From the IMG/VR virus record IMGVR_UViG_3300036770_003657, positions 186,001 to 250,000 of that record: DNA of 64,000 nucleotides. One strand, written 5' to 3'. This document shows positions 25,115-42,770 of this stretch, piece after piece (within the stretch, counting starts at the first letter, position 1; every line of letters begins with the position of its first letter). The translations under genes and the position numbers were made by a program. The notes under the pieces are model-generated. The model saw nothing but the letters and a program-made list of their open reading frames with translations. It ran no database searches and was not told the DNA's origin.

Positions 25115-25143
25115 ATTATATTTAGAAAAATGTTATTTGTCAA
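25115..25143 (-). promoter_or_regulatory. Consensus sigma70 promoter (TTGACA-N17-TATAAT) upstream of the clamp/dpd operon
   Basis: tgtcaa at 25138-25143 and attata at 25115-25120. Confidence 0.85.
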
Positions 25144-27809
25144 GCTTCAAATTCAAATAGTTGATTGAATGTGTTCGATTCCTGCGTGTTTATAATCTTC
25201 CATTTTAGAACACCGATAAGATTTTCTAATTTACTATCTATAATGGTGTCTTCCATGGCAGCATGGTCAAAAGGTAACTCCTTAAACCATTGTGGCAATC
25301 TTAATTCATCTACAGGATATGCTACGCTGGTATAATTTAATGGATTAGGTTTTAGTTTACATACTACTACTTTCATACCGTCAACAATATTCATTGAATA
25401 TTTGTCACCATTCATACGTTTAAGAGTGTTCCAGTTAATAGCAGCTCTAACGTGTCCTGGCATATTGGCCTTACCCTGTTTGCGCTCTTTTTCCTCATAG
25501 TCAGTAATATTATTGGCACGACGTGGACTACCTTTTTCCCAACCAGGACGTGACTTAAAGTTTAGTCTAAATTCAGTAATATAGTCTAATACACTGGTTT
25601 CGTCATGTCCAGTAAGCACCATCTCTAGTACTTGACTTAAAAAGTCCTGTATGAATTCTGGAGTATCAGATCTTTTAAGATCCAGTCCCATGGCCTTGAT
25701 CTTGCCTGGTTTATCTTCTAAGTCCTGTCGTTTACCTTCTTTATCATAATACAGTACACTATAGCGTTTTTTGGTAATGAATAATCCTTTACTGGCCACT
25801 AGTTCACGTCCTGCCTTAATTACACTGCCTCTTGATTTAGGACAATGAAATGCTTGCATCATAAAGTCTGGGAATGAAGTATTCACTACATCTGCTACAC
25901 CATCATACAATTGTATAACAGTTTCTTTGGTCCAAGGTATGATACCTTTATCTATATCTTTTTTCAGCGTACGATAAGCACTAAAGTAGGCACTGTCAGT
26001 ATCACCATAAATTATGCTACGACCAACATGATCATAGTCACCAGTGATAACCTCATTTATCTTAGCAGCCATGTGCTTGGTAATTTGCCTGCCACTAAGG
26101 GTAGTACTTTGCCCAATACGCTTATCAAAAAACCTACACCCAGGATTAAGAATAGCGCCATAAAGACTGTTAAGGTTAATCTTCTTAACCAACTGTCGTT
26201 TATCCCAGTATTCTTCCTCAATTTTATTTCCAGCATTTATAGCCTCCTTAAGTTTGGCCTGCATTTCTTTACGTTCTTTGTACCAACGTTCAAGTAATCC
26301 TGGAATTACTCCTTCCTTCTCATAGGTGAATATTGTACCGTTAGCACTGAGCATCCATGGTTGATTGCTGTCAAAGATCAGTTTATATGCTTCAGCAGCA
26401 CTAACTATGTCATGACCACCTTCTTCCCAGTCAATAATAATTTCAGTACCAATCTCCTTATTCATTACTGCGTCATATTCCATGCTACCAAAACGACCTT
26501 CCCATGACCCAGCAAAGCTCTTACCCTTGGCCATTTGCTCGTTCATATAAGTATCAGTCATTGTTTGACGTAGTTGACCAACGATAGTTTCTGGACCCAT
26601 GTTAAGAGCACGAATAGCACTGGGATATAGACTGTTAATGTCCACACTGCCTATCCAATCGTGTATACCTTCTTTGGGATGAGCTACATAAGCACCAGCA
26701 GCACTACCATCATCACGTTCAGCTTTTCTAGTACGATTAGGAACTACTAGTCCTCTACGATGTGCTTCATTGATAATGGCCTGTTCTGTGACTGCCACAG
26801 CGCCCATTGTAGTTTGTAGCAGTACAGTGTTTTCATGGGCTAGTGTATTGGCTAGATCAATAAATCTTAGTTTACGATCTAGCTTATCTAATAAGGCACA
26901 GTCTTGACGATTGTATTCAATAAACTTGGCAAAGTCAGTATTGTAAAGTTGATCCAGTGTACCTTCATATACTGTCTTACGTTCTCCTACTTCCATCTCA
27001 CCAATAGCATCCAGTCTATAAGTATGTCTTTCTTCATAAGTATATCTGCGATAAAGTTCTAAACTATCAAGATGCACTCGACCAACTAGGTCATAGGTTG
27101 TAGCAGTTTTTCCAAACTTTTCATATTCTCTACGTTTGGGATAATGGTTCCATAAACAAAAGCGTCTTGTATCATCTTTACTCAATACTTTGGTAACACG
27201 ATTTACAGTGTAGGGGATATCATAGCCTTCACTGTTCCAACCTGTTAATACATCAGCATCTTCAATCAAGTTTAAAAAAGTATCCAACATATCAGCTTCA
27301 TTATCAAAGAGGTGTGTATTAGGAAAGTCTTTGACTAACTTTTCTGCCTCTTTAATATTTAGGCCTTTAGGTGGAATAGCCAGTGTGACCAATGTATCGA
27401 GCCATTGTAAATGTACACTGATGGCAGTGATGGGCATAAAAGCATCATCTGGACTAGCATATCCACGTTCTGGATCAAAGTCTACCTCAATGTCAAAAAA
27501 TGCTACCTGTAGTTTTGGTGCTTCAGCATTGAGATATTGATCACTTAAACAGACAAATATTTGGTTAATATCTGCTTCATAGATCTTTTTATTTGAGTTA
27601 ATTTTAAGTTCTTTGTGGAAATCCTTTTGTGTTTTACAAATAGTTCTACTTACTGGGGTTCCATATATACTGGTATATTTTCCTTTGGAGTCGTCCGAGT
27701 AAAATACGAACTTAGCAGGATATTCTTTAAAAACACGTTGACCCTTGCGGTCACGTTCCACGACCTTGACAATATCATTGTCCCGATCAAAATAGGCATC
27801 TACATACAT
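25140..27809 (-). CDS. polB: Family B DNA polymerase
   Basis: Exo FDIE, GWNSEGYD and YNRQD; pol DINSLYPS, KINLNSLYG, YGDTDS and KKRY. Confidence 0.97.
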   Translation of the reverse strand: MYVDAYFDRDNDIVKVVERDRKGQRVFKEYPAKFVFYSDDSKGKYTSIYGTPVSRTICKTQKDFHKELKINSNKKIYEADINQIFVCLSDQYLNAEAPKLQVAFFDIEVDFDPERGYASPDDAFMPITAISVHLQWLDTLVTLAIPPKGLNIKEAEKLVKDFPNTHLFDNEADMLDTFLNLIEDADVLTGWNSEGYDIPYTVNRVTKVLSKDDTRRFCLWNHYPKRREYEKFGKTATTYDLVGRVHLDSLELYRRYTYEERHTYRLDAIGEMEVGERKTVYEGTLDQLYNTDFAKFIEYNRQDCALLDKLDRKLRFIDLANTLAHENTVLLQTTMGAVAVTEQAIINEAHRRGLVVPNRTRKAERDDGSAAGAYVAHPKEGIHDWIGSVDINSLYPSAIRALNMGPETIVGQLRQTMTDTYMNEQMAKGKSFAGSWEGRFGSMEYDAVMNKEIGTEIIIDWEEGGHDIVSAAEAYKLIFDSNQPWMLSANGTIFTYEKEGVIPGLLERWYKERKEMQAKLKEAINAGNKIEEEYWDKRQLVKKINLNSLYGAILNPGCRFFDKRIGQSTTLSGRQITKHMAAKINEVITGDYDHVGRSIIYGDTDSAYFSAYRTLKKDIDKGIIPWTKETVIQLYDGVADVVNTSFPDFMMQAFHCPKSRGSVIKAGRELVASKGLFITKKRYSVLYYDKEGKRQDLEDKPGKIKAMGLDLKRSDTPEFIQDFLSQVLEMVLTGHDETSVLDYITEFRLNFKSRPGWEKGSPRRANNITDYEEKERKQGKANMPGHVRAAINWNTLKRMNGDKYSMNIVDGMKVVVCKLKPNPLNYTSVAYPVDELRLPQWFKELPFDHAAMEDTIIDSKLENLIGVLKWKIINTQESNTFNQLFEFEA

Positions 27810-31069: not shown

Positions 31070-33061
31070 TTAATCCTTGTCTGATCCATCAGCCTTTTTA
31101 TGACTCTTATAGCCTTTGTTTTTCATATGCCAGGCCAATGCCCATGGGTTCTTTTCCTTACCATCTTTAGTTTTACCCTTGGTTAGTTCAGGATGTTTTT
31201 TCATAGCCTTTACCGTGCCCTTAAAACCAGGTGGGCTTACTTCTTTAAGGCCAAAACTCTGTAGTATACCTTCACTAATGCTTTCCATCTTAACACAATT
31301 GTCTACAGTTTTGCCACCTTTCTTTTTAGTGCCCATACGCTTATAGCCTTTCCAGCAGGCTTTACCGTCTACACCTTTTTGTTTTTCTTCCGCCACACCT
31401 TGCTCTTTGATCTTGTCTTGAATCTTTTTGTAGCGATGAAAGTTAGCATCTTTATCAGCATCAGTCTTGCCAAACTTACCAGCGTCCATCTTCTTATCAA
31501 TTTCACGCTTGGCATATCCTGGAACAACCTTGCGTAGAGTCTGTGGCAAGCCTTCCGCCACACCTTGCTCTGGCAAATTAGGTTTACGATGTTTTCCATG
31601 TGCATTTTTAATACTGGCTTTCAGACTGTTTATCTGGTCTCTGGATGGGAGACCTTTTCTATTGCCAGCAAGATTAAGGCTATGTTTGATGCCGCTACGA
31701 CCAATGCCCTGCCCCTTTTTCAATAGATCATCGTTATCGAATTCACTGCCTACACCACCCATCCTGCGCTTTTGACCCGGATCGTTTTCTGGACGCTCAG
31801 GAAAATCGTAGCCGTACCCAATGCTGTCATAATCGTCGCTATCCCCGGGCTCTTGAGTATACAATCTGTCTTTGTATTTAGGATCACGCCATTTGGCCGC
31901 TTCCGCCACACCTTGCTCTTTGATGTTTAGTTGCTTTTTTGTATAGGCCACTGCGTCATCCAATGCGGCCAACCCTTTCTGTTCTGAATTCTTACTTAAT
32001 CCAGTATCATATAGTTCATCACCGTTATAGATACGCACCTGCCAGCCCATTCCTGTATCAACCAAATCGTGTCTAAAGTTGCCCACCTTGACAGATTTTA
32101 CTACATTCTTTCCCAAGCCTTCCGCCACAGCCTTCTTTTCATCCTTTTTCTTCTCAGGCTTAACAGGTTTAGCCACATCCTTATCACTTACTGGATAGTC
32201 TCTTAAATGACGAGTAGTAGCATTAGGTTTTTTCACAGCCTCTCTAAGCATTTGAATAAGTTTTGGTAGTGATTTACCTTTAAAACTAGCAGACGTTAGA
32301 TCTGGATATTTGTCTAACAAACGATTAATAGTCTGTTGTCTCATTTTATTACTAAAGTCTTGATCATTTGGACCGTCTCTATCTATACGATCTGTACGTG
32401 GCATACGACCACTTTGACTAAATTGATCATCTCTATTACGACCAAACCTACTCTCTGCTGCGCCACCTACCAGTTTACCTTTAGGATAACCTGTTGGTCC
32501 TGGACTACGTAATTGTCCAGCCTGTCCAATTTTGTGTTTACCTAAACCAGCAAAAGGTATACTATTTTCATCTAAGTTTTTACCTTTATGTTTTTCTTTA
32601 CCCTGCTTTTGATCTTTCTTTTTGTCTTTATGTTTGCCTGCTCCAGTTTGTGGACGTAATGGACCTTGTCTTGGCTTTTGCGGCACACGAGCATCTTCCA
32701 TCATACGTTGTACAATACTACGAACTTGTTCTGTACTCTCATAAGATTCTTGTGATGGTAAAGGAGCAGGTGGACGTGGTCGTTGTCTTGGACTAATACT
32801 ATCTAGTGCTTTCTTTGTAGCAGGCCCAATTTGATCAGCACCTACATAGTCAGTCATCTCTCTGCCACCAGTTACGGTGACTATTTGATAAGCATCAGGT
32901 ATTTTTTGACTGATTAAGATCATTTTATTACTTTGCTGATCTAGTACGCCAGCCATACCGTTATAACGTATGTTAGCAAAGCCATCACCCAACTGGCCTA
33001 TTATTTGCATATTAGGGATGTCAGCCTGCTCAACTAGTTGGATGAAGTTTTTAATAGTCAT
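31070..33061 (-). CDS. Modular basic putative capsid-internal polyprotein with EQGVAE linkers
   Basis: Repeated (E)QGVAE/AVAE and hydrophobic-X-E motifs separating K/R-rich modules. Confidence 0.6.
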   Translation of the reverse strand: MTIKNFIQLVEQADIPNMQIIGQLGDGFANIRYNGMAGVLDQQSNKMILISQKIPDAYQIVTVTGGREMTDYVGADQIGPATKKALDSISPRQRPRPPAPLPSQESYESTEQVRSIVQRMMEDARVPQKPRQGPLRPQTGAGKHKDKKKDQKQGKEKHKGKNLDENSIPFAGLGKHKIGQAGQLRSPGPTGYPKGKLVGGAAESRFGRNRDDQFSQSGRMPRTDRIDRDGPNDQDFSNKMRQQTINRLLDKYPDLTSASFKGKSLPKLIQMLREAVKKPNATTRHLRDYPVSDKDVAKPVKPEKKKDEKKAVAEGLGKNVVKSVKVGNFRHDLVDTGMGWQVRIYNGDELYDTGLSKNSEQKGLAALDDAVAYTKKQLNIKEQGVAEAAKWRDPKYKDRLYTQEPGDSDDYDSIGYGYDFPERPENDPGQKRRMGGVGSEFDNDDLLKKGQGIGRSGIKHSLNLAGNRKGLPSRDQINSLKASIKNAHGKHRKPNLPEQGVAEGLPQTLRKVVPGYAKREIDKKMDAGKFGKTDADKDANFHRYKKIQDKIKEQGVAEEKQKGVDGKACWKGYKRMGTKKKGGKTVDNCVKMESISEGILQSFGLKEVSPPGFKGTVKAMKKHPELTKGKTKDGKEKNPWALAWHMKNKGYKSHKKADGSDKD
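31387..32129. repeat. Dispersed 20-bp direct repeat CTTCCGCCACACCTTGCTCT (3 exact copies plus 1 partial), in frame
   Basis: Copies at 31387-31406, 31552-31571 and 31900-31919; partial CTTCCGCCACA at 32119-32129; periods 165, 348 and 219 nt. Confidence 0.9.
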
Positions 33062-34272
33062 TATGCTACCGCTTTCTTCTTTTTAGCAATGGCAATAGCA
33101 GCTTGTTGTTTAGCATTTGCTGCTTCTGTTTTCAAACGACCATCTCGCTCAGCACTCTTTAACAGAGCTGCTCGATCTCCATAACTGCCACGCTTAACAT
33201 CCCTAGCAGCATCCTTTTCACCCTTTGTTGGATTCTTTACGTGCTTCAAAGGATTAAATGCTTCTTTCATACTACACTCTTTCATACCGTGTACTGGACA
33301 ACTTTTACCTTTGGCTGTATGATTACACTTGGCTGATTCGCTAACTTTTTTATCCTTCACAGCCTTCTTCATTGGCTCTTTTTTATTGCCATCCTTGTCC
33401 ATATCTAAAAAGTCTGGTTTAGCCTTTTTACCTTCTTCAAATGGCTTACCTGACTTGGCTGCTGCCTTAGCACGACTGCCCCATACTTCATCTTTAGGAC
33501 TTTCTTTCTTGCCATCACCATCATAATCTTTTTTACTTACTTTCTGACCTTCTCTGGTTTTTACATTTTTGCCTGGAGGTGGAGCAGTAGCACCATCTGG
33601 AGGACTTGGAATATTACCAGTTACACCACCTTTAGGATATAGTTTATTAGTGGGCTTTGGTTGTGCCATTGTATTTTCACTAGTTTTCTTACGTATGCTA
33701 TCTACACTGTAGCCTTGACTCTTATGATCACGACCTGCACGATCTCTTACTTCGCTTTCGCTTTCACCTTCATCTGCATCATAGTGTACATTTTTAGATT
33801 TATTGCCATCTTTGTGCATGAGTTTTACGCTGTACTGACTCTTAGTACTAGTATCAACTTTGCCCTTACGCTTGTCCTTAGCAGTAAAGCCAGTAGCCTC
33901 ATCTACCTTTTCATCCTTTTTCTTCATCTTTTCAGCCTGGGCCTTTTTAAGGGCTTTCATTTTGTCCTTGGCTTCCATTAGTTTGTTTCTAAGGATACGT
34001 TTTTCTTCGGTAGTGTACATATCACTCATTTCAAGTTTTTGTCCATATTCATTGAACTTCATCTCATACTCTAAATAGTGATATACGCTAGCCATATAGT
34101 CTGCTGCTTTAGTAATTTTAGCCTGTATCCACCCTTCTAGTTGGGCATTATCATCCATCATTTTAAATAGTTTTAATGCGTATCTAGCAGTTTTATAAAG
34201 GTCAGCCTTGGCCATTTTACCTTCATCTTCATTCTCTGGGGCGGGCAAACTGCCCTGCATAATAGGATCCAT
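33061..34272 (-). CDS. Modular basic putative capsid-internal protein
   Basis: Short modules (DYDGDGKKES, KPDFLDMDKDGNKKEPMKKA, CNH...CPVHG..EC) separated by x-x-E sites; late box at 34293-34300. Confidence 0.55.
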   Translation of the reverse strand: MDPIMQGSLPAPENEDEGKMAKADLYKTARYALKLFKMMDDNAQLEGWIQAKITKAADYMASVYHYLEYEMKFNEYGQKLEMSDMYTTEEKRILRNKLMEAKDKMKALKKAQAEKMKKKDEKVDEATGFTAKDKRKGKVDTSTKSQYSVKLMHKDGNKSKNVHYDADEGESESEVRDRAGRDHKSQGYSVDSIRKKTSENTMAQPKPTNKLYPKGGVTGNIPSPPDGATAPPPGKNVKTREGQKVSKKDYDGDGKKESPKDEVWGSRAKAAAKSGKPFEEGKKAKPDFLDMDKDGNKKEPMKKAVKDKKVSESAKCNHTAKGKSCPVHGMKECSMKEAFNPLKHVKNPTKGEKDAARDVKRGSYGDRAALLKSAERDGRLKTEAANAKQQAAIAIAKKKKAVA

Positions 34273-34295: not shown

Positions 34296-34502
34296 TTATC
34301 GTTTTAACATTGTTCCGCCAAATAAGCTAATATCACTATCTAGTGCATTTTTGGCTGTTCCATTTTTATTTTTTAATGTTTCTACTTTAACTAACTTTGG
34401 TTTTCCGCCTTTATTAGTTATATGTGGGTTGGCTATGGCAACTACATTACCAGCACTGGTGGCTCCTCCGCTTGCTGTTTCATACAGTTCCCTTAGTCTC
34501 AT
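34296..34502 (-). CDS. Small putative capsid-internal protein
   Basis: CTS-like start MRLRELYE. Confidence 0.55.
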   Translation of the reverse strand: MRLRELYETASGGATSAGNVVAIANPHITNKGGKPKLVKVETLKNKNGTAKNALDSDISLFGGTMLKR

Positions 34503-34880
34503 TTATACTCCATATTGATTACGTTTGATTTTTGCTACAGGGCTTACTGTATTTGTGCTTTTCAGTTCTAAGCTACGCATATCACCTTTGTTTAAATCTT
34601 TGTGATTTGCACCTACAGCTTTACTGGCTTTAACAAACATTTCATGTTCTACTTCTGTATAAGGATGTATAGTTTTCTTTTTACCAAACCAACTCTTGGC
34701 ATCTATATCAGGAACACTTTTTCCATCAGTACTGGCCATAGCTTGTCCTAACTTAAAAGCCACGTAGTCGCTATTGGCTCTTTCTGCGTCACTGTAAATG
34801 CTTACACCGCGTGTAGACTCTTTTTGACGTTTAGTCAATTTGCCTTGTTTACGCTCTGCCAGTATTTCTCTAATCTTCAT
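34503..34880 (-). CDS. Putative capsid-internal protein
   Basis: CTS-like start MKIREILAE. Confidence 0.55.
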   Translation of the reverse strand: MKIREILAERKQGKLTKRQKESTRGVSIYSDAERANSDYVAFKLGQAMASTDGKSVPDIDAKSWFGKKKTIHPYTEVEHEMFVKASKAVGANHKDLNKGDMRSLELKSTNTVSPVAKIKRNQYGV

Positions 34881-36238
34881 TGCTTGAACATATCCTTAGA
34901 TCCAAATACTTGGCCAAACTTATCACCTAACATATTCTTTAACTTAGTACGTTGATCCGCTCTAAGTACAATCATACCATTATCAAACTTGTAGCCCATG
35001 TCACGTAATTTGGGCATTAGGTCAGTAGCCAACAATTTGTACCTAAATACATCTGGTTGTGCCACAGCATGACCACCCATTTGGCTATTTGGTTTACCAG
35101 GTATGGGCGCACGACGTCGTTTACCATCTAGACCAACGACAAAATGATCTACACCTTTAGGTTTAGTTTCTGGTTCTACCCCAGCATCTTTACCTTTATA
35201 CAGTTTAAAGCGTTCATCAGCACCACCACCTATAAGGCTTTTTAATTCCTTTAGTTCAGGTCCAAAGTCACTGCGTAGAGCACTTAGAGGGAATACAAGT
35301 TCAGCAGCCTCGCCACCAATAAAGTCCACGTCACGTATAGCATCTTCTAATTCACCAAGAGCACTGCTGGCATCAGTAAATTCAAAGTTCACTCTAAGTG
35401 GACGACCTTTGCCACCCTTCTTATCTCTAATGCCTACATTTTGACTACGCTGTACAACTTCTTCTGGGAATGTAGCAAAGTCACCTATAACCTGTATTAG
35501 ATTAGTTCTTGGGTTTAGTTTGAATATAATGTATAGTGTGCCACTAGGCTGTTCTAATTCATATAGTCTCATTTCTTTAGCCTTCTTTTTTGGTTTAGCA
35601 GCAGCGAATTGTCCCATACGCTCCTTGGCCTTACGCATAAGATCCATAACTTGATCATCATCTATTTCTGGACTCATAGCATCACGCCATACTGCAAATT
35701 GTTCTTGTTCACTCTTAGTGGGATCTGTTAATACTTGACGCATTGGTGTAGCACGTGGGCCTTCTTCACCAGCACTAGGGTCACCTGTTTCTTGACGGGC
35801 TATAACGTCCAAGTTATCAAACTTAAATGGAATATCACCTGCCTTATTAGGTTTACCGTTATATTGTTTAAGATATTGGAATGCCTGTTTTTGATCAGCA
35901 CCAACAACCACTGTGACGTTGTTATAACCTTGTTGATTTAGGTTAGTCAATACTCTAGTTAGATCAGGCAGTTCATCTGTGGCAGTTTGAAATATATGCC
36001 CTTGTTCTGGGAATACCTTTTTGTATATGGCCAATTTTTCTTCAGGTTGTAAAGGATCATCTGGACCATATGTTCTACTCACTACAAAATATGGATCACC
36101 GCCCATCTTGTCAGCATAGGTTATAACACTACTGGCCAACATCATATGACCTTTATGACCCATACCTCTGCCCCAACCTACCACAGCAGTTGATCCTTCT
36201 CCTGTTCTATCTAGTTCAAATAATTGTCTAAGCCTCAT
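34877..36238 (-). CDS. HxGH cytidylyl/nucleotidyltransferase-like protein with extra C-terminal domain
   Basis: GWGRGMGHKGH, DPL..EEK, VVVGADQ and RATPMR; start MRLRQLFE at 36238 is ATGA-coupled. Confidence 0.72.
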   Translation of the reverse strand: MRLRQLFELDRTGEGSTAVVGWGRGMGHKGHMMLASSVITYADKMGGDPYFVVSRTYGPDDPLQPEEKLAIYKKVFPEQGHIFQTATDELPDLTRVLTNLNQQGYNNVTVVVGADQKQAFQYLKQYNGKPNKAGDIPFKFDNLDVIARQETGDPSAGEEGPRATPMRQVLTDPTKSEQEQFAVWRDAMSPEIDDDQVMDLMRKAKERMGQFAAAKPKKKAKEMRLYELEQPSGTLYIIFKLNPRTNLIQVIGDFATFPEEVVQRSQNVGIRDKKGGKGRPLRVNFEFTDASSALGELEDAIRDVDFIGGEAAELVFPLSALRSDFGPELKELKSLIGGGADERFKLYKGKDAGVEPETKPKGVDHFVVGLDGKRRRAPIPGKPNSQMGGHAVAQPDVFRYKLLATDLMPKLRDMGYKFDNGMIVLRADQRTKLKNMLGDKFGQVFGSKDMFKQ

Positions 36239-38115
36239 TCGCCTTTCCTTGGAGCCCAATTAGCTTGGTCAATTGCTTTGACAAATTGTCCAGGTAAATC
36301 ATTTTGAAATGCTACACCAGGATGAGCACTAACATATCCTTCTGGTTTTGTCTGTCTTATACCATTGTGTGTTCCACTGCTTAGGTTTTGAATCATTTCC
36401 AGTTTAGCTCTAGTTAGTAATTCTACAGCAGTTAATACAGCATCCATACCAGCACGATCTTTAAGTATCATATCTGCTTGTTTAGAGCTGGTATTAGCAG
36501 TGACCCAATCAATAAATTTTTGTTTAACTCCTGGAATACGTAGGTTTTGATTATAAAATTTGTACAATACATCACCTGGTTTACTTAGTCCAGGCTTAGG
36601 AGCTAGGAAGTTGTTGATTAGATTGGCATTTTCCTGTATATATGATTGAACACTATCTAAACTATTTTCTGTAAATTGTGGAGTTTGTTCAGTATACGTT
36701 GTACCCTGCACTATGGTATATGGGGTGCTCAAGCTTTCTGGGTCTGGATAACGTCCTTCATCACTGCTGCCCAAACTTTCATAAAACCCTGTAGCAGCCA
36801 CCATAACTTTGGCATTGCGAATCTTACGACCAAGATCACTATTTTTTCCTATATGGAATGTAGTAATATTTGGAGTGAACTCATACTCTTGCGTTTTTGG
36901 ATTAAGTATTGGTTTGGCACTTTGTCCATCTGGTTTAGTACCTGGATAAAATAATAATCCACCTTCTAAGAATCCATCATCTGGACTGGCCTGTTCAAAG
37001 AAGGGCCAAAGGCTGGCTAATTGTTTGGCATATTGACGTCGTTGTGCTATTTGATCAGGATCAGCTTTACCCGTACCCATTAGGAACTTTTGTACTTCTT
37101 CTGCACTGCGGGGTATGGTGCTTATGCCATTTTGTAACTCTGTCTTACCACGTTTAAGATATTCCCAAGCATTTTTAGGAATCATCATAAACTGTCCATC
37201 CTGTTTGCCCCAATATACTACAGGGCTACCATCCCATTTAAGTTCTATATTACCACCTTGTGTGCTCATATAACGAAGTCGTTCTACAGCATGTAGTCCG
37301 CCCTTGGCACCATTAGTAAAAACTAGATCTTCAATATGTTGATATTTGCGACCTATTGTTGGTGCTGCTGCTTCGAAAAACTTCTTCTCAGGTCCTTTTA
37401 ATGGCGCACTTTTCCAACTTTGTCCACTACTAGCCAAGCTATAAATTTTTTCACGTTGCGTTATAGGTAGTGCATTCATTATACTTTCTACACTGCCTAA
37501 ATCCTGACTACTTGCTCTTGGACCCAATAATTTCTGTGCTATCTCATCCATATCAGTTGATATAAGGTTAGCCTTTTTACCTTTATCGTCTCTAGCAAAT
37601 AACCCTTCATCTGGACTCCATAGCATACCTTGACTGCTAGCAAGAGCATTCATAACCATCTGTTTGTGTACACCTTTATAAGGACTATCTTTTGGTATGC
37701 TATGAACATGGTACCTATGTACCTGTTGTGCATTGGGCACAACTTTTATATCTACCTGATGAAAACTGCGTCCGAATGGTAGTTTAACATGGACCTGTGT
37801 ACCACTTTTTTTAGTATCAAGACCTTTACCTTGTAGGAATCGTTCTAACTCTACTCTAACACCTTTTGCATCTTGTTGTTGAAATACTTTAGCAGCTACA
37901 TTAGCATCTGCCATAACATCAAGATCACCACTCATAACACCTGGTGTAGGTGTTGCTCCACTGCCTATACGATATAGTTTAATGCCTGTACCCTGTAGGT
38001 AGCGTTCCAATTCTGTTTCTAACCTAGGTGCAAGACTTTGGTCAAATGGTTCAACATCGTCCCAAATATTGCCACCTTCCTTAAGTGGCCTAGCAAATAG
38101 CTCACGAAGGATCAT
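36235..38115 (-). CDS. Two-domain protein: Pol-beta-type nucleotidyltransferase + ligase-like (KxDG) domain
   Basis: IGSG...SGDLDV...HQVDI in the N-terminal half; HIED, ELKWDGSP and PEGYV in the C-terminal half. Confidence 0.62.
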   Translation of the reverse strand: MILRELFARPLKEGGNIWDDVEPFDQSLAPRLETELERYLQGTGIKLYRIGSGATPTPGVMSGDLDVMADANVAAKVFQQQDAKGVRVELERFLQGKGLDTKKSGTQVHVKLPFGRSFHQVDIKVVPNAQQVHRYHVHSIPKDSPYKGVHKQMVMNALASSQGMLWSPDEGLFARDDKGKKANLISTDMDEIAQKLLGPRASSQDLGSVESIMNALPITQREKIYSLASSGQSWKSAPLKGPEKKFFEAAAPTIGRKYQHIEDLVFTNGAKGGLHAVERLRYMSTQGGNIELKWDGSPVVYWGKQDGQFMMIPKNAWEYLKRGKTELQNGISTIPRSAEEVQKFLMGTGKADPDQIAQRRQYAKQLASLWPFFEQASPDDGFLEGGLLFYPGTKPDGQSAKPILNPKTQEYEFTPNITTFHIGKNSDLGRKIRNAKVMVAATGFYESLGSSDEGRYPDPESLSTPYTIVQGTTYTEQTPQFTENSLDSVQSYIQENANLINNFLAPKPGLSKPGDVLYKFYNQNLRIPGVKQKFIDWVTANTSSKQADMILKDRAGMDAVLTAVELLTRAKLEMIQNLSSGTHNGIRQTKPEGYVSAHPGVAFQNDLPGQFVKAIDQANWAPRKGE

Positions 38116-38498
38116 TTATATAAACCATCCTTAATATTTTGTATTTCAGTTTCGTAGATATGATGTGCTACTTGCTCTTTAAAATCTTCTTCTAAATTAT
38201 CATCTAGTTCTCTTACTGGAAATTCTTTTTTATATTCATCGTAGGCTTTTTCGATAACTTTTTTAAACACTCTGTGGCTAAATTCTCCACCACTTTCATA
38301 TTGAGCTTTACAGGTTTTTAGTATAGGAAAAAAGTGACGACGATAAAAGTCATCATTGTGATGCATGAAAAATACAAGATCTTCTGCTAGATCAAATTCA
38401 TATTTTCCTTGATCATCCTTAATAATTTTACTGGGACCAGTGTTTAACATGTCCTCAATGGGCATTTCCTTATTCCCAAACATTTCAAATAGTTTCAT
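38112..38498 (-). CDS. Hypothetical protein (CTS-like start MKLFEMF)
   Basis: GGTGAT RBS; late box at 38550-38557. Confidence 0.55.
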   Translation of the reverse strand: MKLFEMFGNKEMPIEDMLNTGPSKIIKDDQGKYEFDLAEDLVFFMHHNDDFYRRHFFPILKTCKAQYESGGEFSHRVFKKVIEKAYDEYKKEFPVRELDDNLEEDFKEQVAHHIYETEIQNIKDGLYK

Positions 38499-38549
38499 AT
38501 CACCAAGCCTTATCATGCTATGTTAATAACCATAGCCAGTCTTACTTAA

Positions 38550-38579: not shown

Positions 38580-39227
38580 CTATTTTTCGCTGATGACTCG
38601 ATCTATACGCTGTATATTTGAGCCAATAAACATCTGTACCATGCTCAAACTTTTGGCATCTTTAACATAAAAGTAACTGTCACCTACTCTGTAACCACGC
38701 TTTACGTGGCGTTGACAGCGTTCTGGCATACGAATTTTGTCATTATCCCTACACCAATTAAAAAAGCTTTCATTATTATCTATACGATTACTAATGGTCA
38801 CTTTATAGTCATAGTTAATACGTTTGAGATATATTGTATTCTTTTCTAAAACTGGAGTAGTTTCAGAAGGGATACTAATATATTTAATTTGATTTTTAAG
38901 ATTTTTGCTAACTGAATAAAAATCATCGTAGCTATCTGTGTAATAACTTACAAAAGGGCTACTGACCATTACTTTGTATTCGTGGCCAGCAGTCTGAAAA
39001 GTTCTTGCTATTAATAATGATATATCATAATCTGACTTCTCTCCACTCCAAATATAGGGAGGAAATTTATCTACACTTTTCCAATATAATATTTTACTAA
39101 CAATTAATTCCATATCCTTATTCCTAAACATAGGCGCAAATTTAGTTACAAGAACTATTTTGTACCTATATTTGTCTAGGAATAGTTTATTGGTTCTCTT
39201 CGTGGGTAACAATGTTAGGTGATTCAT
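38580..39227 (-). CDS. Hypothetical protein
   Basis: 215-aa ORF downstream of clpA. Confidence 0.55.
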   Translation of the reverse strand: MNHLTLLPTKRTNKLFLDKYRYKIVLVTKFAPMFRNKDMELIVSKILYWKSVDKFPPYIWSGEKSDYDISLLIARTFQTAGHEYKVMVSSPFVSYYTDSYDDFYSVSKNLKNQIKYISIPSETTPVLEKNTIYLKRINYDYKVTISNRIDNNESFFNWCRDNDKIRMPERCQRHVKRGYRVGDSYFYVKDAKSLSMVQMFIGSNIQRIDRVISEK

Positions 39228-41451
39228 TTTCAGTTACTTTACTAGTTCTTACACGTTTTGTCACGGTGATTTGGTCATTTTCCAAACCAATTACTGCCGA
39301 ACCACCATCCTTAAGTTCACCAAACAGCATCATACGGCTTAGGGGACGTTTAATCTCCTTGTCTATAACACGTTGTAGTGGACGGGCACCCATTTTACTA
39401 TCAAACCCCTTTTCAATCAAGTTATTTATAGCAGCATCGTTAATACGTATGCGAATGCCCTTGTCTGATACTTGTCGTTTAAGTTCATCAATAAACTTAA
39501 CAACAACCTTATACATTGTATCTTTATTCAACTTGGTAAATGTGATTATGGCATCCAAACGATTTCTAAACTCAGGAGCAAAGAATTTCTTTAGATCCTT
39601 GTCATCATAGTCTTTTTCCTGCTTACCAAAACCAATTTGATTCTTTTCAGCAGCTTGGGCACCAGCATTAGTAGTAAGGATTAGGATAATGTTTCTACAA
39701 TCTGCTTTCTTACCATTGCTACCAGTTACAAACCCATTGTCCATCATCTGTAATAGTATTGTACTAACATCTGGATGACTCTTTTCTACTTCGTCAAAAA
39801 GTAACACACAGTATGGATTTTCTTGTAATTGAGTGATAAGTAATCCTGCATTTTCCTCAAAGCCAACATATCCTGGAGGAGATCCAATCAACTTGCTCAC
39901 GCTGTGCTTTTCTTGATACTCACTCATATCAAAGCGTATAAGTTTTACACCAAGATGTTTGGCTAATGTTTTAGCTGTTTCTGTTTTACCACAACCAGTT
40001 GGCCCCATAAAAACAAATGATCCAATAGGCTTGTTTTCAGGCTTAAGACCAGCACGAGCGACTAGTATTTTATCTACAAGTTCTGTAACAGCATCATTCT
40101 GCCCAAATACTTCATCATTGATTTGCTTTTCAAGATTAGCCAAGTTATTGCTCTCTGTTTCAGCAATTTGTTCTTCAGGCATTTGAATAGCCTGACTTAG
40201 CTCAAATTGAATTTCGTGTTCACCAATAATACGTTCCTGATCTAATTTAAGATTAAATCTACTACAGGCACAATCAATAAGATCAATTGCTTTATCAGGC
40301 AACTTTTTCTCTGTTTGATACTTTATGCTAAGTTTTACAGCAGCTTGAATAGCATCATCTGTAATTTTAACTTTATGGAACTGCTCGTAGTATTTTTTAA
40401 CACCTTTAAGGATTTGAATAGTTACGTCGTATGTTGGTTCATCCACCGTGATACGTTGGAACCTACGCATTAGAGCACGATCTTTTTCAAAGTACTTGCG
40501 ATATTCCTCCCAAGTTGTACTGGCCACTACTTTGATATTACCCTTGCTTAGAGCAGGTTTCATCATGTTAGCAAGGTCATTAGCACTATTACCTGCACTG
40601 CCTGCTCCGCTGATCATATGAGCTTCATCAATAAACAATATTGTTTTACCCTTGGTCTGTAGGCCTTTGAGCACTAGTTTAAAACGTTCTTCAAAATCTC
40701 CACGATATTTACTACCAGCTAACATGCTGCTAATATCCAAACTATAAACCTTGTAATCCTTTAAAAACTCCGGTACATGACCTTTTTCAATATTAAAAGC
40801 CAGTCCTTCTGCAATAGCAGTTTTACCAACACCTGGATCACCGACAAGCATAACATTATTTTTATTGCGACGTCCCATGGCTAAGGCAATATTTTCCAAT
40901 TCTGTCACTCTGCCTACCACTGGATCAACTTTATTACGTTTGACAAGATCATTCAAATTTGTAGTAAATGCTTTTATGGCACGATCTACTTGATGATCAG
41001 TGACTTCTTCTTCTTCAGTTTGTACTTCACTATTGAGATAATCTGCAAACTTATTCTTATCTACCCCAGCCTGTTGAATATAATAACTGGCATAGCTACG
41101 CTTCTCACTCATAATGCTTAGGAACACGTCACTAAGTTCCATAGTTTGTCGGCCATTAAATAGGGCCTGTGTAAATGCACGATTCAATACACGCTCTACT
41201 GCCTGTGTCTTTTTTGGTTTAGTGGCTTCTTCTTTAATAATATCATCAAGTTTATTCTTTAAGTAGTGCTCTAAATTCTTTTTAATGTATTCTGAATCAG
41301 CGCCATATGTTTGTATAGTATTAACAAAATGCTCTTCACCTAACATTGAGTATAATAAATGTTCTAATGTTAAGTATTCATGTTTATAGTTTTTAGCTAG
41401 TTCGATGGCCTGTTCAAAAACTTTTTTAAGATTGTCGCTGGGCTCTACCAT
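39187..41451 (-). CDS. clpA: ClpA-like Hsp100 ATPase
   Basis: Clp-N HEYLTLEHLL; two AAA modules GDPGVGKT and GPTGCGKT; RFDMSEY, IGF loop and GARPL. Confidence 0.92.
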   Translation of the reverse strand: MVEPSDNLKKVFEQAIELAKNYKHEYLTLEHLLYSMLGEEHFVNTIQTYGADSEYIKKNLEHYLKNKLDDIIKEEATKPKKTQAVERVLNRAFTQALFNGRQTMELSDVFLSIMSEKRSYASYYIQQAGVDKNKFADYLNSEVQTEEEEVTDHQVDRAIKAFTTNLNDLVKRNKVDPVVGRVTELENIALAMGRRNKNNVMLVGDPGVGKTAIAEGLAFNIEKGHVPEFLKDYKVYSLDISSMLAGSKYRGDFEERFKLVLKGLQTKGKTILFIDEAHMISGAGSAGNSANDLANMMKPALSKGNIKVVASTTWEEYRKYFEKDRALMRRFQRITVDEPTYDVTIQILKGVKKYYEQFHKVKITDDAIQAAVKLSIKYQTEKKLPDKAIDLIDCACSRFNLKLDQERIIGEHEIQFELSQAIQMPEEQIAETESNNLANLEKQINDEVFGQNDAVTELVDKILVARAGLKPENKPIGSFVFMGPTGCGKTETAKTLAKHLGVKLIRFDMSEYQEKHSVSKLIGSPPGYVGFEENAGLLITQLQENPYCVLLFDEVEKSHPDVSTILLQMMDNGFVTGSNGKKADCRNIILILTTNAGAQAAEKNQIGFGKQEKDYDDKDLKKFFAPEFRNRLDAIITFTKLNKDTMYKVVVKFIDELKRQVSDKGIRIRINDAAINNLIEKGFDSKMGARPLQRVIDKEIKRPLSRMMLFGELKDGGSAVIGLENDQITVTKRVRTSKVTENESPNIVTHEENQ

Positions 41452-41953
41452 ATTTTTTCCTTATTTTGTCGAATTTTTTCATAGCCATACTTTGCTTGAG
41501 TTTACTTACACGATCTGTAAAACAGATACCATCTAAGTGATCTAGTTCATGTAAAAAACATTTAGCATCTATGTCATGTAGTGATATTACACAATTATTG
41601 CCATCGCTGTCAAGATACTCGGCAACAACAATTTTTGGTCTTTTAACTGGAATAAGCATTTTAGGAAAGCTCAAACATCCTTCAATTGACTCCAATAATT
41701 GATCACTTGCTGCCTGTAGCCTTGGGTTAAACATGGCAAATGGTCCTGTTTCTAAACTAATGTCTCTAGGAAAGATAGTAATTACTCTAGCTCTAAGCCC
41801 AACTTGATTTCCACTAAGACCTATACCTCTTTCTTTAACCATTAGTTCTATCATTTCTTTTTCAATTTGTTTTGGATCCATTATGGGATTCTCAAAATCA
41901 AAATCAGGCATTTGTTCTCTTAGTATGTCATTTGGAAAGGTTATTAAGTTCAT
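41426..41953 (-). CDS. def: Peptide deformylase
   Basis: GIGLSGNQ, EGCLS and HELDHLDG. Confidence 0.92.
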   Translation of the reverse strand: MNLITFPNDILREQMPDFDFENPIMDPKQIEKEMIELMVKERGIGLSGNQVGLRARVITIFPRDISLETGPFAMFNPRLQAASDQLLESIEGCLSFPKMLIPVKRPKIVVAEYLDSDGNNCVISLHDIDAKCFLHELDHLDGICFTDRVSKLKQSMAMKKFDKIRKKYGRAQRQS

Positions 41954-42770
41954 TTTTTATATCCAATAATTTTTTCTTTATCTTTTCATCGTGTATTGTA
42001 GGAATTTTAATATAAATTATAATTACAAAATCTCCTTGTTGTCCAGTAGTAATATTTGTGAATCCTAGTCCTTTAGATGAATATTCGCCACCGTGTGTCA
42101 TTCCTGGACGTACTTTGATATTTAATAATCTACCATCTATTGTTTCCACTGGTTTATTACATCCTATCATAGCTTCAATAGCATCAATTTCTATGATAGT
42201 AGTTATGTCGTTATTTCTTCTAGTAAAATTTAAATCCTCTGCTACCAAGATACTAACATTTAAATCCCCACGAGCCAATTGAGGATATGTGTCATCACCC
42301 ATACCTTTAAATTTTAGTATATGTCCACTTTCAATTCCAGGTGGTATATTAATTACCACTGTTTCTTTACGTCCAGAAGGTAAAGCATAACTAGCTTCAA
42401 TTTCCTTGCCAATAAAACTATCAAGTAGAGTAATCTTACACTTGATATTAAGATCTAAATTTTTATTTCTTACATGTCTACGACCAAAATCAAACCCTGC
42501 CCGTCCTCTAAACATATCATTAAATACGTCGTGTATATCTTCAAAACTTCTAAAGTTTCCATTAAAGTTTTGTTTAACATTGATTTCACTGTCGTATCTA
42601 TTACGTTTATTTGGGTCACCTAACGTATCGTAGGCTTGACTAATTTTTTGGAAGTGGCTTTCATCACCACCTCTATCTGGGTGATGCTCCATAGCCAATT
42701 TACGATAGGCTGTTTTTATATCTTGTGCTGTTGCTTCTCGGCTAACGCCTAATATGTCGTAGTAGTTCAT
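41928..42770 (-). CDS. dnaJ: DnaJ/CbpA-type co-chaperone (no Zn finger)
   Basis: J-domain YYDILGV...HHPDRGGD plus DnaJ C-terminal domain. Confidence 0.9.
   Translation of the reverse strand: MNYYDILGVSREATAQDIKTAYRKLAMEHHPDRGGDESHFQKISQAYDTLGDPNKRNRYDSEINVKQNFNGNFRSFEDIHDVFNDMFRGRAGFDFGRRHVRNKNLDLNIKCKITLLDSFIGKEIEASYALPSGRKETVVINIPPGIESGHILKFKGMGDDTYPQLARGDLNVSILVAEDLNFTRRNNDITTIIEIDAIEAMIGCNKPVETIDGRLLNIKVRPGMTHGGEYSSKGLGFTNITTGQQGDFVIIIYIKIPTIHDEKIKKKLLDIKNELNNLSK

Follow-up and report, generated by a model that had tools for sequence, protein, structure and literature searches.

Why would a large phage place three nucleotidyl-transfer domains, each from a different superfamily, in two coupled proteins whose N-termini resemble capsid-targeting signals? 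The question is raised by P0001 and P0002, the products of two minus-strand genes in a stretch of 64,000 nucleotides (the window; bases 186001-250000) of the IMG/VR virus record IMGVR_UViG_3300036770_003657, which is 399,796 bp long, is estimated to be complete and has 36.6% G+C. A first-pass annotation, made from the letters alone, had described these domains and proposed a virion-packaged enzyme set that acts before phage gene expression. The coordinates of the open reading frames (ORFs), their strand, the overlap of the two genes in an ATGA and all the motifs that it had named were confirmed, and the motifs are conserved in homologues. Predicted folds and invariant catalytic residues likewise confirm three domains from three superfamilies. 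The explanation that we consider best, with a probability of about 0.5, is that P0001 and P0002 constitute a packaged, coupled set of polymerase, ligase and transferase, cut by a gp21-type protease, which heals and seals nucleic-acid ends. The features on which this reading turns are:

36235-38115, minus strand: P0001, 626 residues; polymerase-like domain and DUF6267
38077..38115, minus strand: P0001 leader, residues 1-13 (M-I-L-R-E-L-F ... L-K-E); putative capsid-targeting propeptide, its L-x-E end abutting GGNIW
37408..38076, minus strand: family-X-polymerase-like domain (palm and thumb), residues 14-236; predicted catalytic G51-S52, D64, D66 and D122
37360..37407, minus strand: inter-domain linker, residues 237-252; F246-F247-E248 followed by AAAP, a putative prohead-protease site
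36238..37359, minus strand: DUF6267 domain (PF19782), residues 253-626; predicted ligase-type covalent nucleotidyltransferase with motifs I, IV and V
34877-36238, minus strand: P0002, 453 residues; transferase domain and second module
36215..36238, minus strand: P0002 leader, residues 1-8 (M-R-L-R-Q-L-F-E); start codon overlaps the P0001 stop (ATGA)
35603..36214, minus strand: CTP_transf_like (HxGH) domain of P0002, residues 9-212; NMNAT-like
34880..35572, minus strand: second module of P0002, residues 223-453; opens with an internal leader, M-R-L-Y-E-L-E

The N-terminal domain of P0001

Structure prediction and Foldseek comparison, which had been proposed as a check, recovered nucleotidyltransferase folds, at middling scores for the ligase-like domain, with catalytic residues that are conserved in homologues, and the Pol-beta-type domain recognized earlier could be made more specific, as a family-X palm and thumb resembling that of African swine fever virus (ASFV) Pol X. 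The AlphaFold 2 (AF2) model, built from 44 homologues, has a predicted local distance difference test score (pLDDT) of 94, with low confidence for the first ~13 residues (~50 at residues 1-10), and G51, S52, D64, D66 and D122 are invariant in these 44 diverse sequences, at a mean column identity of 33%. When the model was compared by VIA-align with 48,161 representative PDB chains, the top eight matches were all family-X DNA polymerases, with Z-scores of 10.3-11.4 over 161-188 residues. They include Pol beta palm-thumb structures (Z 11.2-11.4, 172-188 residues), ASFV Pol X (Z 10.9, 161/176 residues, root-mean-square deviation (rmsd) 3.1), Pol lambda and TdT (Z 10.7 each), Thermus Pol X and Leishmania Pol beta. 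Terminal uridylyltransferases (TUTases), CD-NTases, OAS and CCA-adding enzymes reach Z-scores of at most 8.9, mostly over ~100 residues of the palm. Foldseek also places Pol lambda with the domain (E 2e-8, probability 1.0), and in the viral library retrieves family members in uncultured phages and Agrobacterium phage Atu_ph07, followed by the family-X polymerases of giant viruses.

At the sequence level the relationship is remote: the domain has no match in Pfam or NCBIfam at E-values up to 1, P0001 as a single sequence matches no PDB sequence, and the profile of the domain finds a weak match to the TUTase Tailor (E 0.006) among PDB sequences. The domain spans ~225 residues and the 8-kDa (dRP lyase) and fingers helix-hairpin-helix domains are absent, most alignments beginning at residue 142 of Pol beta. 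On the modelled fold, the N-terminal domain of P0001 is thus a family-X-like polymerase reduced to a minimum, as ASFV Pol X is. This palm-and-thumb match favours the extension of 3' ends over protein nucleotidylation or the synthesis of signal nucleotides, two roles that had been entertained for the set and that are now disfavoured.

A predicted polynucleotide ligase in DUF6267

The C-terminal domain of P0001 belongs to DUF6267, of which we found no mention in the literature searched. Its AF2 model has a pLDDT of 93, and K293, D295 and G296 of motif I (K-W-D-G), together with E592, G593 and K613, are invariant in 40 homologues. Motif IV (E592-G-Y-V) and the motif V lysine, K613, lie on the last strands, after a helical insert of ~100 residues. 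The top 20 VIA-align matches among the 48,161 chains are all polynucleotide ligases, with Z-scores of 5.0-7.0 and rmsd of 4.4-5.9. Among RNA ligases the Z-scores are 7.0 for the nick-sealing Rnl of Naegleria, 6.2 for trypanosome REL1, 5.9-6.0 for fungal Trl1, 5.6-5.8 for T4 Rnl2 and 5.5 for T4 Rnl1, and for several DNA ligases they are 5.0-5.6. In Foldseek, Trl1 and an archaeal RNA ligase rank first, weakly (E 0.04 and above). Taken together, the uniform list of ligases and the invariance of the motif I lysine, of EG and of K indicate that DUF6267, as modelled, belongs as a divergent polynucleotide ligase to the lysine-nucleotidyl (KxDG) superfamily. The model shows the helical insert and no C-terminal β-barrel, so that an OB-fold domain is absent from it, and this architecture is consistent with the RNA-ligase type.

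DUF6267 occurs in 468 phage records, mostly of T4-like cyanophages. A ligase of the PF01068 family is absent from the three Kyanoviridae records tested, namely S-PRM1, HTVC008M and S-CREM2 (NAD-dependent ligases were not tested there), and all three encode DUF6267; in these phages a leaderless DUF6267 protein may be the replicative ligase. The genome under study encodes a canonical ATP-dependent DNA ligase (PF01068) elsewhere, and neither an NAD-dependent ligase nor a PF09414 RNA ligase was found in it. The presence of the canonical enzyme rules out DUF6267 as the sole ligase of this phage and suggests that the DUF6267 ligase has a specialised role here. Among the viral clusters of the ESM Atlas, one with 65 members has DUF6267 fused to a Cu/Zn superoxide dismutase domain.

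The ligase matches bring up the possibility that the substrate is RNA. In such a scheme tRNAs cut by host anticodon nucleases would be restored as they are by T4 Pnkp and Rnl1, and the Pol X-like domain would rebuild 3' ends. RNA ligases lead the structural matches of DUF6267, an OB domain is lacking, and relatives link the ligase or the transferase to AAA_33/Zeta-type kinases and HAD phosphatases, as in Pnkp and Trl1. However, the DNA ligases score within ~1-2 Z units of the RNA ligases, near the tie margin of 1, the partner domain fits templated family-X DNA polymerases better than RNA-specific nucleotidyltransferases, and known RNA repair systems do not need a polymerase. We therefore regard repair directed at RNA as doubtful, while noting that it is compatible with packaging. 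As the models stand, the polymerase partner argues for DNA as the substrate, and the ligase argues for RNA, through its nearest folds and its lack of an OB domain.

The HxGH transferase of P0002

P0002 opens with a domain in which H28-K-G-H31 lies within GWGRGMGHKGH. The motif follows the first strand. Conservation reaches at least 90% at G23, R24, G30 and H31, and members from jumbo phages and cyanophages alike keep A163 and R167 without exception; a second motif, of the SxxxxR type, is also present. Residues 17-221 match PHROG 3041 (E 6e-22) and PHROG 395 (E 6e-9), both described as 'cytidyltransferase', and residues 13-222 are placed by the ESM Atlas with viral PF01467 clusters at TM-scores of 0.72-0.78, some of these clusters being fused to Zeta/AAA_33 kinases or NT5C phosphatases. 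P0002 itself has no match in Pfam (E up to 1) or NCBIfam, while two homologues pass the 21-bit cut-off of PF01467 (S-CREM2 gp154 with 22.3 bits and an S-PRM1 protein with 27.2 bits). The NMNAT models match cyanophage homologues weakly (E 7e-4 to 4e-3, far below the cut-offs) and do not match P0002. Against PDB sequences, P0002 gives chance-level matches to NifB alone (E 0.04), and the transferase profile gives insignificant matches to RibF and ATP-sulfurylase alone. We take the GR...HxGH form of the motif to be similar to that of archaeal and NadR-type NMNAT. From its motifs and sequence relatives, the domain is accordingly described as a HIGH-motif, NMNAT-like nucleotidyltransferase.

The start of P0002 is the ATG that yields M-R-L-R-Q-L-F, which is kept in homologues, some loci showing long spurious upstream extensions; the longest ORF begins at a TTG 21 bases further upstream (36239-36259). 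Residues 223-453 have no family, feature or structure match. At this position homologues carry ParB, sigma-70 region 4, GNAT or other modules, and in the C-terminal extensions of transferase homologues a repeated Q-G-V-A-E linker separates the modules.

An NMNAT-like enzyme could also act on the NAD+ pool in its own right, rebuilding NAD+ against NAD-depleting defences while the other domains make or destroy signals or nucleotidylate proteins. This would agree with the weak NMNAT matches of the cyanophage homologues (E ~1e-3), which are named NMNAT in the literature, with the form of the HxGH motif, which resembles that of archaeal and NadR-type enzymes, and with the occurrence of CD-NTases among the weaker matches to the modelled fold of the P0001 N-terminal domain. 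Nevertheless, the alignments with CD-NTases, OAS and TUTases are confined mostly to the palm, whereas those with family-X polymerases extend over 160-190 residues; DUF6267 retains the full set of ligase motifs; and NMNAT activity alone leaves the recurrent fusion to a polymerase and a ligase unexplained. We consider manipulation of NAD+ or of signal nucleotides improbable as the function of the set.

Coupling of the three enzymes

Gene order was compared in 80 IMG/VR loci, with identities down to 53%. The order DnaJ, peptide deformylase, ClpA-like ATPase, 215-residue protein, 134-residue protein and polymerase-ligase is kept: the genes for the ClpA-like and 215-residue proteins precede the polymerase-ligase gene in 80/80 loci, and those for DnaJ and the deformylase do so wherever the contig reaches. 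The transferase gene begins within a few bases of the end of the polymerase-ligase gene in all 77 loci that extend far enough, four loci have an in-frame fusion of the two, and several database fusion proteins of 984-1072 residues are known. With NT, LIG and CT for the polymerase-like, DUF6267 and transferase domains, the orders seen among representatives at 50% identity are NT-LIG, LIG-CT, NT-LIG-CT, LIG...NT, CT-NT-LIG, CT-HAD-NT-LIG and NT-LIG-...-NT5C. The two orders with end-healing modules are those of P0290 (CT-HAD-NT-LIG) and P0390 (NT-LIG-...-NT5C). In S-PRM1 the ligase and transferase genes are adjacent, and in HTVC008M they flank a 170-residue ORF and a gene for a Zeta/AAA_33 (P-loop) kinase. 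HAD phosphatases and P-loop kinases represent the activities by which Pnkp, Trl1, PNKP and LigD-type repair enzymes heal ends.

The coupling that the overlap of the two genes had suggested thus recurs in relatives, both as synteny (77/77) and as independent fusions. Because these fusions arose independently and in different orders, they are strong comparative evidence that the polymerase, ligase and transferase form one functional unit in a shared pathway.

Leaders and putative protease sites

In T4 the gp21 protease cuts after L/I-x-E (PMC9026906), and the capsid-targeting sequence (CTS), the first 10 residues of IPIII, is sufficient for loading proteins into the prohead core (PMC9026906, PMC3012670). 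In the T4 record IPII and IPIII start with MKTYQEFIAE and gp24 with MAKINELLRE, and gp23 is cut at ..FLTE/AEIGG. P0001 and P0002 both start with M-x-L-R-[EQ]-L-F. The homologues of P0001 start with M-x-L-R-E-[LI]-F, followed by a variable stretch and then by [LIV]-x-E directly before the fold. In this leader L3, R4, E5, F7 and E13 are invariant in 31 homologues in spite of many synonymous codons, and the peptide is unstructured in the AF2 model. Over a wider set, [LIVMF]xE stands directly before GGN in 134/135 unique contexts.

Sites of the same kind are found between domains. In the linker of P0001, [LIVF]-x-E precedes AAAP amid variable flanks; E248 is at least 90% conserved and the residue at -2 is hydrophobic in every sequence. 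In alignments this site falls where the N-terminal leader of stand-alone DUF6267 proteins ends, a leader that in most cases comprises 8-10 residues of the form M-[KR]-x-x-[EDQ]-[LF]-[LI]-x-E. A leader containing [LIVMF]xE is present in 34 of 44 stand-alone ligases and the other 10 have no leader. An N-terminal peptide that is optional and disordered yet conserved behaves as a signal rather than as a part of the enzyme. Ahead of the ligase domain [LIVMF]xE is present in 134/150 unique contexts (background 12%) and ahead of the transferase domain in 76/78 (background 20%), the junctions of ligase-transferase fusions reading I-A-E, I-Q-E, L-Q-E, V-R-E or M-N-E. The start of the P0002 type is found in the 73 loci in which the transferase gene is separate, and the 4 fused loci have ..N-[IL]-Q-E before NINRTGEG instead.

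Within the genome, the start motif M.[LIVM][RKY][EQD][LIVMF], a pattern chosen post hoc, is present in 7/458 ORFs against 0.9 expected. These ORFs include P0001, two small proteins of 125 and 68 residues encoded downstream of P0002, an 80-residue ORF, and two genes near 387-388 kb of the record. Three of the seven are consecutive in the operon, or four when P0002, missed by that ORF call, is counted. The 80-residue ORF (record 88994-89236, plus strand, outside the window) lies directly after the portal gene and starts with MILRELF as P0001 does; its position and length match those of T4 gene 67, which encodes a prohead core protein. The two genes near 387-388 kb (record 387024-388377, minus strand, also outside the window) encode a 273-residue protein that starts with M-R-L-K-E-F and has a peptidoglycan-binding-like repeat and a lysozyme-like C-terminus, and a basic 98-residue protein that starts with M-K-I-Y-E-I-L-N-E.

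The major capsid protein of this Rak2-like, T4-related jumbo phage shares 65-70% identity with its counterparts in Rak2/121Q-like jumbo phages and in related phages of Vibrio and Sinorhizobium. A prohead protease of the gp21 type (Peptidase_S77; PF03420, 89.7 bits) and a capsid protein of the gp23 type (PF07068, 328 bits) were both detected. They belong to a T4-type head module with the order portal, 80-residue ORF, three further ORFs (two of ~200 residues and one for an acidic 350-residue protein), gp21-type protease, scaffold and gp23-type capsid protein, which is broadly the order of T4, where gene 67 (243 bp) directly follows the portal gene. In a nucleotide search the region had no match among phage records. 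The T4-type late promoter TATAAATA is not enriched in the genome (27 sites against ~41 expected) and is absent upstream of the operon, and the intergenic regions inspected for promoters gave no clear consensus.

The CTS-like starts and the F-F-E site that had been pointed out in P0001 and P0002 have thus gained comparative support, through the gp21-type protease, the conserved [LIVMF]-x-E, the optional leaders, and leaders of T4 type on homologues detected in virions (see below). From these comparisons we infer that the leaders, together with the [LIVMF]-x-E found at each boundary between domains, are signals of T4 type for capsid targeting and for the gp21 protease.

Virion proteomes of relatives and the case for packaging

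Two homologues of the transferase come from cyanophages with virion proteomes. S-CREM2 gp154, a homologue of the N-terminal part of P0002 (pairwise E 2e-12), starts with MKNFSSFLTE and was detected in purified virions by mass spectrometry (PMC10665884). S-SCSM1 ORF91, an NMNAT-like protein that starts with MKSFLQFLKE and is 29% identical to P0002 over 214 residues (E 2e-16), was likewise detected in purified virions by mass spectrometry (PMC9602691). Both reports comment on the repeated detection of such proteins in cyanophage virions (PMC10665884, PMC9602691). The genes flanking ORF91 are annotated as virion proteins; one of them, gp280, has a 23-residue motif that is 91% identical to one in a 403-residue protein encoded in the window. 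Both cyanophage proteins resemble P0002 in the region of residues 14-221 and in their T4-like leaders. They differ in that no Pol X-ligase protein is coupled to the transferase, the DUF6267 protein of these phages being short and leaderless. In S-SCSM1 (85625-93170), S-PRM1 and HTVC008M a protein of ~310-440 residues precedes the ligase-transferase cluster; it has a PD-(D/E)xK-like D...S-L-K motif and is annotated as a virion protein in S-SCSM1.

Several observations weigh against a packaged end-sealing set. The Z-scores of the ligase domain are middling (5-7), and its profile has no sequence-level match in the PDB. The motif [LIVMF]-x-E is short and common, and in a loose genome-wide test ([LIVMF]xE in the first 14 residues, with a background of 20%) the operon is the top window, with 7/10 genes and an uncorrected P of 8e-4, which is not significant after correction for ~450 windows; what carries the case is therefore the leader motif, which is more specific, and conservation in alignment columns. 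The operon has genes of replication for neighbours: that for a family B DNA polymerase in this phage, and gp41/UvsX in cyanophages. The authors of the proteomes themselves point out that soluble proteins, when abundant, may purify together with virions (PMC10665884, PMC9602691). Finally, in the records of S-CREM2 and S-SCSM1 the DUF6267 proteins, which are short and leaderless, are not marked 'virion protein', nor is that of S-CREM2 in the part of the proteome table examined. This last observation implies that the ligase is not intrinsically a virion protein, and it fits the idea that the leader is what directs packaging.

On a rival reading, the proteins would be ordinary cytoplasmic enzymes of replication or repair, which fill gaps and seal nicks in Okazaki maturation or repair without being packaged, and whose N-terminal motifs are incidental or serve another purpose. 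The neighbourhood agrees with this, with the family B polymerase gene close by and the cluster of the cyanophages and HTVC008M following the gp41 primase-helicase and UvsX, as do the spread of DUF6267 over 468 records and its presence in all three Kyanoviridae records without a PF01068 ligase, for which NAD-dependent enzymes were not tested. The leaderless proteins of S-CREM2 and S-SCSM1 without virion annotation are in line with it too. On the other hand, this genome already has its canonical ATP-dependent DNA ligase; the leaders are invariant, disordered, optional among homologues and end in protease-type sites; homologues of the transferase were detected repeatedly in virions; and the operon encodes modular low-complexity proteins with QGVAE repeats, one of which has a motif of a virion protein. 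Weighing both sides, we hold unpackaged replication or repair enzymes to be possible though unlikely. The proposal of an injected enzyme set is thus partly upheld, in that coupling, leaders and the homologous transferases of virions speak for it, while the packaging of P0001 and P0002 themselves is predicted from their sequences.

Other genes of the operon

The remaining genes around P0001 and P0002 are as follows:

38112..38516, minus strand: 134-residue protein, upstream of P0001 and ATGA-coupled to it; present in 80/80 loci
34503..34880, minus strand: 125-residue protein, downstream of P0002, with the leader M-K-I-R-E-I-L-A-E; present in 54/80 loci
34296..34502, minus strand: 68-residue protein, with the leader M-R-L-R-E-L-Y-E and a copy of the mature N-terminus predicted for the major capsid protein
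33061..34272, minus strand: 403-residue lysine-rich protein, with the 23-residue motif in common with S-SCSM1 gp280
31070..33061, minus strand: 663-residue modular protein with three Q-G-V-A-E sites

Three successive ATGA overlaps join the 134-residue gene to P0001, P0001 to P0002 and P0002 to the 125-residue gene. The 134-residue protein has no family match, and the C-terminal motif of the 125-residue protein is also the C-terminus of the fused 984-residue homologues. After its leader, the 68-residue protein continues with a stretch that almost repeats the mature N-terminus predicted for this phage's gp23-type capsid protein (..Y-L-A-E / T-A-S-A-G-T-T-S-A-G-N-V..), and it may be a mimic of the capsid arm or a decoy for the protease. 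Whole modules of the 663-residue protein, among them a C-terminal motif that contains Cys, recur in the variable extensions at the C-termini of transferase homologues; judged from these sequences, cargo modules seem to have been shuffled between polyproteins.

Upstream, at 38580-42770 (minus strand), are the genes for DnaJ, peptide deformylase, a 754-residue ClpA-like double-AAA+ ATPase with an I-G-F loop, and the 215-residue protein. It is conceivable that this unfoldase or the chaperones handle the leader-bearing proteins. About 1 kb downstream of the operon end lies the gene for an 889-residue family B (T4 gp43-like) DNA polymerase (25140-27809, minus strand), recognized by its sequence motifs.

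A probable virion-delivered break-repair module

In the reading that we prefer, the set is probably a virion-delivered break-repair module. The leaders would load P0001 and P0002 into the prohead core, where a gp21-type protease would cut them into single enzymes, and these would be delivered with the DNA, ready before phage gene expression. The polymerase would extend or gap-fill 3' ends that the ligase would then seal, as in LigD or the Pol beta/ligase III pathway, and the HAD and kinase modules of relatives would clean the ends. The transferase would probably supply or regenerate a nucleotide cofactor such as NAD+; that an NMNAT-like enzyme might regenerate NAD+ from nicotinamide mononucleotide for the ligase is one attractive possibility.

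The nearest precedents for the delivery are the internal proteins and Alt of T4. The likenesses are the gp21-type protease and gp23-type capsid protein of this phage, the short leaders that end in L/I-x-E as in IPII and IPIII, an enzymatic cargo as in the case of Alt, and genes that lie outside the head cluster as they do in T4. The differences are that the proteins here are multi-domain 'polyproteins' with sites between the domains, and that their packaging is predicted from sequence. To our knowledge no polymerase, ligase or HIGH-motif transferase is known as a T4-type internal protein. It is plausible that the system is a new kind of enzymatic cargo among the capsid-targeted proteins of T4 type. 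The two cyanophage proteome reports do not mention leaders, protease sites or a ligase (PMC9602691, PMC10665884).

As to the enzymes, the Pol X and DNA ligase of ASFV, which form a minimal pair for base-excision repair, are comparable in the near end-to-end match of the polymerase, the lack of 8-kDa and fingers domains, and the pairing with a ligase. Unlike the ASFV pair, polymerase and ligase are here in one polypeptide, the ligase is OB-less and appears closer to RNA ligases, and the polymerase has no sequence-level similarity to the Pfam family-X models. We know of no phage polymerase of family-X type that is fused to a ligase. Bacterial LigD and the mammalian PNKP/Pol beta/ligase III pathway likewise bring together, in some cases in a single chain, a ligase, a 3'-extending polymerase and a phosphatase or kinase that heals ends. 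The parts here are not homologous to those of LigD: the polymerase is of family X where LigD has a primase-polymerase, HAD takes the place of the LigD phosphoesterase, and the ligase is Rnl-like. No Ku partner was seen, no search having been aimed at one. T4 Pnkp with Rnl1, and Trl1, are similar in that Trl1, Rnl1 and Rnl2 are among the best matches of the ligase fold and that AAA_33-type kinase and HAD modules occur in relatives. They differ in that a polymerase and a HIGH-motif transferase are present here, and in that the helical region of DUF6267 is inserted before motif IV, whereas that of Rnl1 and Trl1 is appended at the C-terminus.

A broader and distinctly speculative version, to which we give little weight, is that a large clade of aquatic jumbo phages packages a self-contained break-repair machine, made as a polyprotein and separated by the prohead protease into its parts: a minimal Pol X, a ligase like Rnl, an NMNAT-like enzyme that regenerates NAD+ and, in some relatives, phosphatases that heal ends. 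Injected with the genome, it would act before gene expression begins, resealing entering DNA (or host tRNAs) that restriction, CRISPR or anticodon-nuclease defences have cut, and would be a functional analogue of LigD, assembled from unrelated parts and supplied as protein.

Conclusion

The prediction of a ligase fold is the first functional assignment for DUF6267, and it offers a testable candidate for the ligase that is apparently missing in T4-like cyanophages and pelagiphages. The fusion of a family-X-type polymerase to a ligase extends to phages, via non-homologous parts, the design of polymerase, end-healing enzyme and ligase that is seen in LigD and in eukaryotic break repair. If the leaders are capsid-targeting signals, the enzymatic cargo of T4-style delivery is far richer than Alt together with the small internal proteins, and the leaders could be used to predict injected proteins in uncultured phages. 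If true, the proposal would also explain why NMNAT-like proteins recur in proteomes of cyanophage virions.

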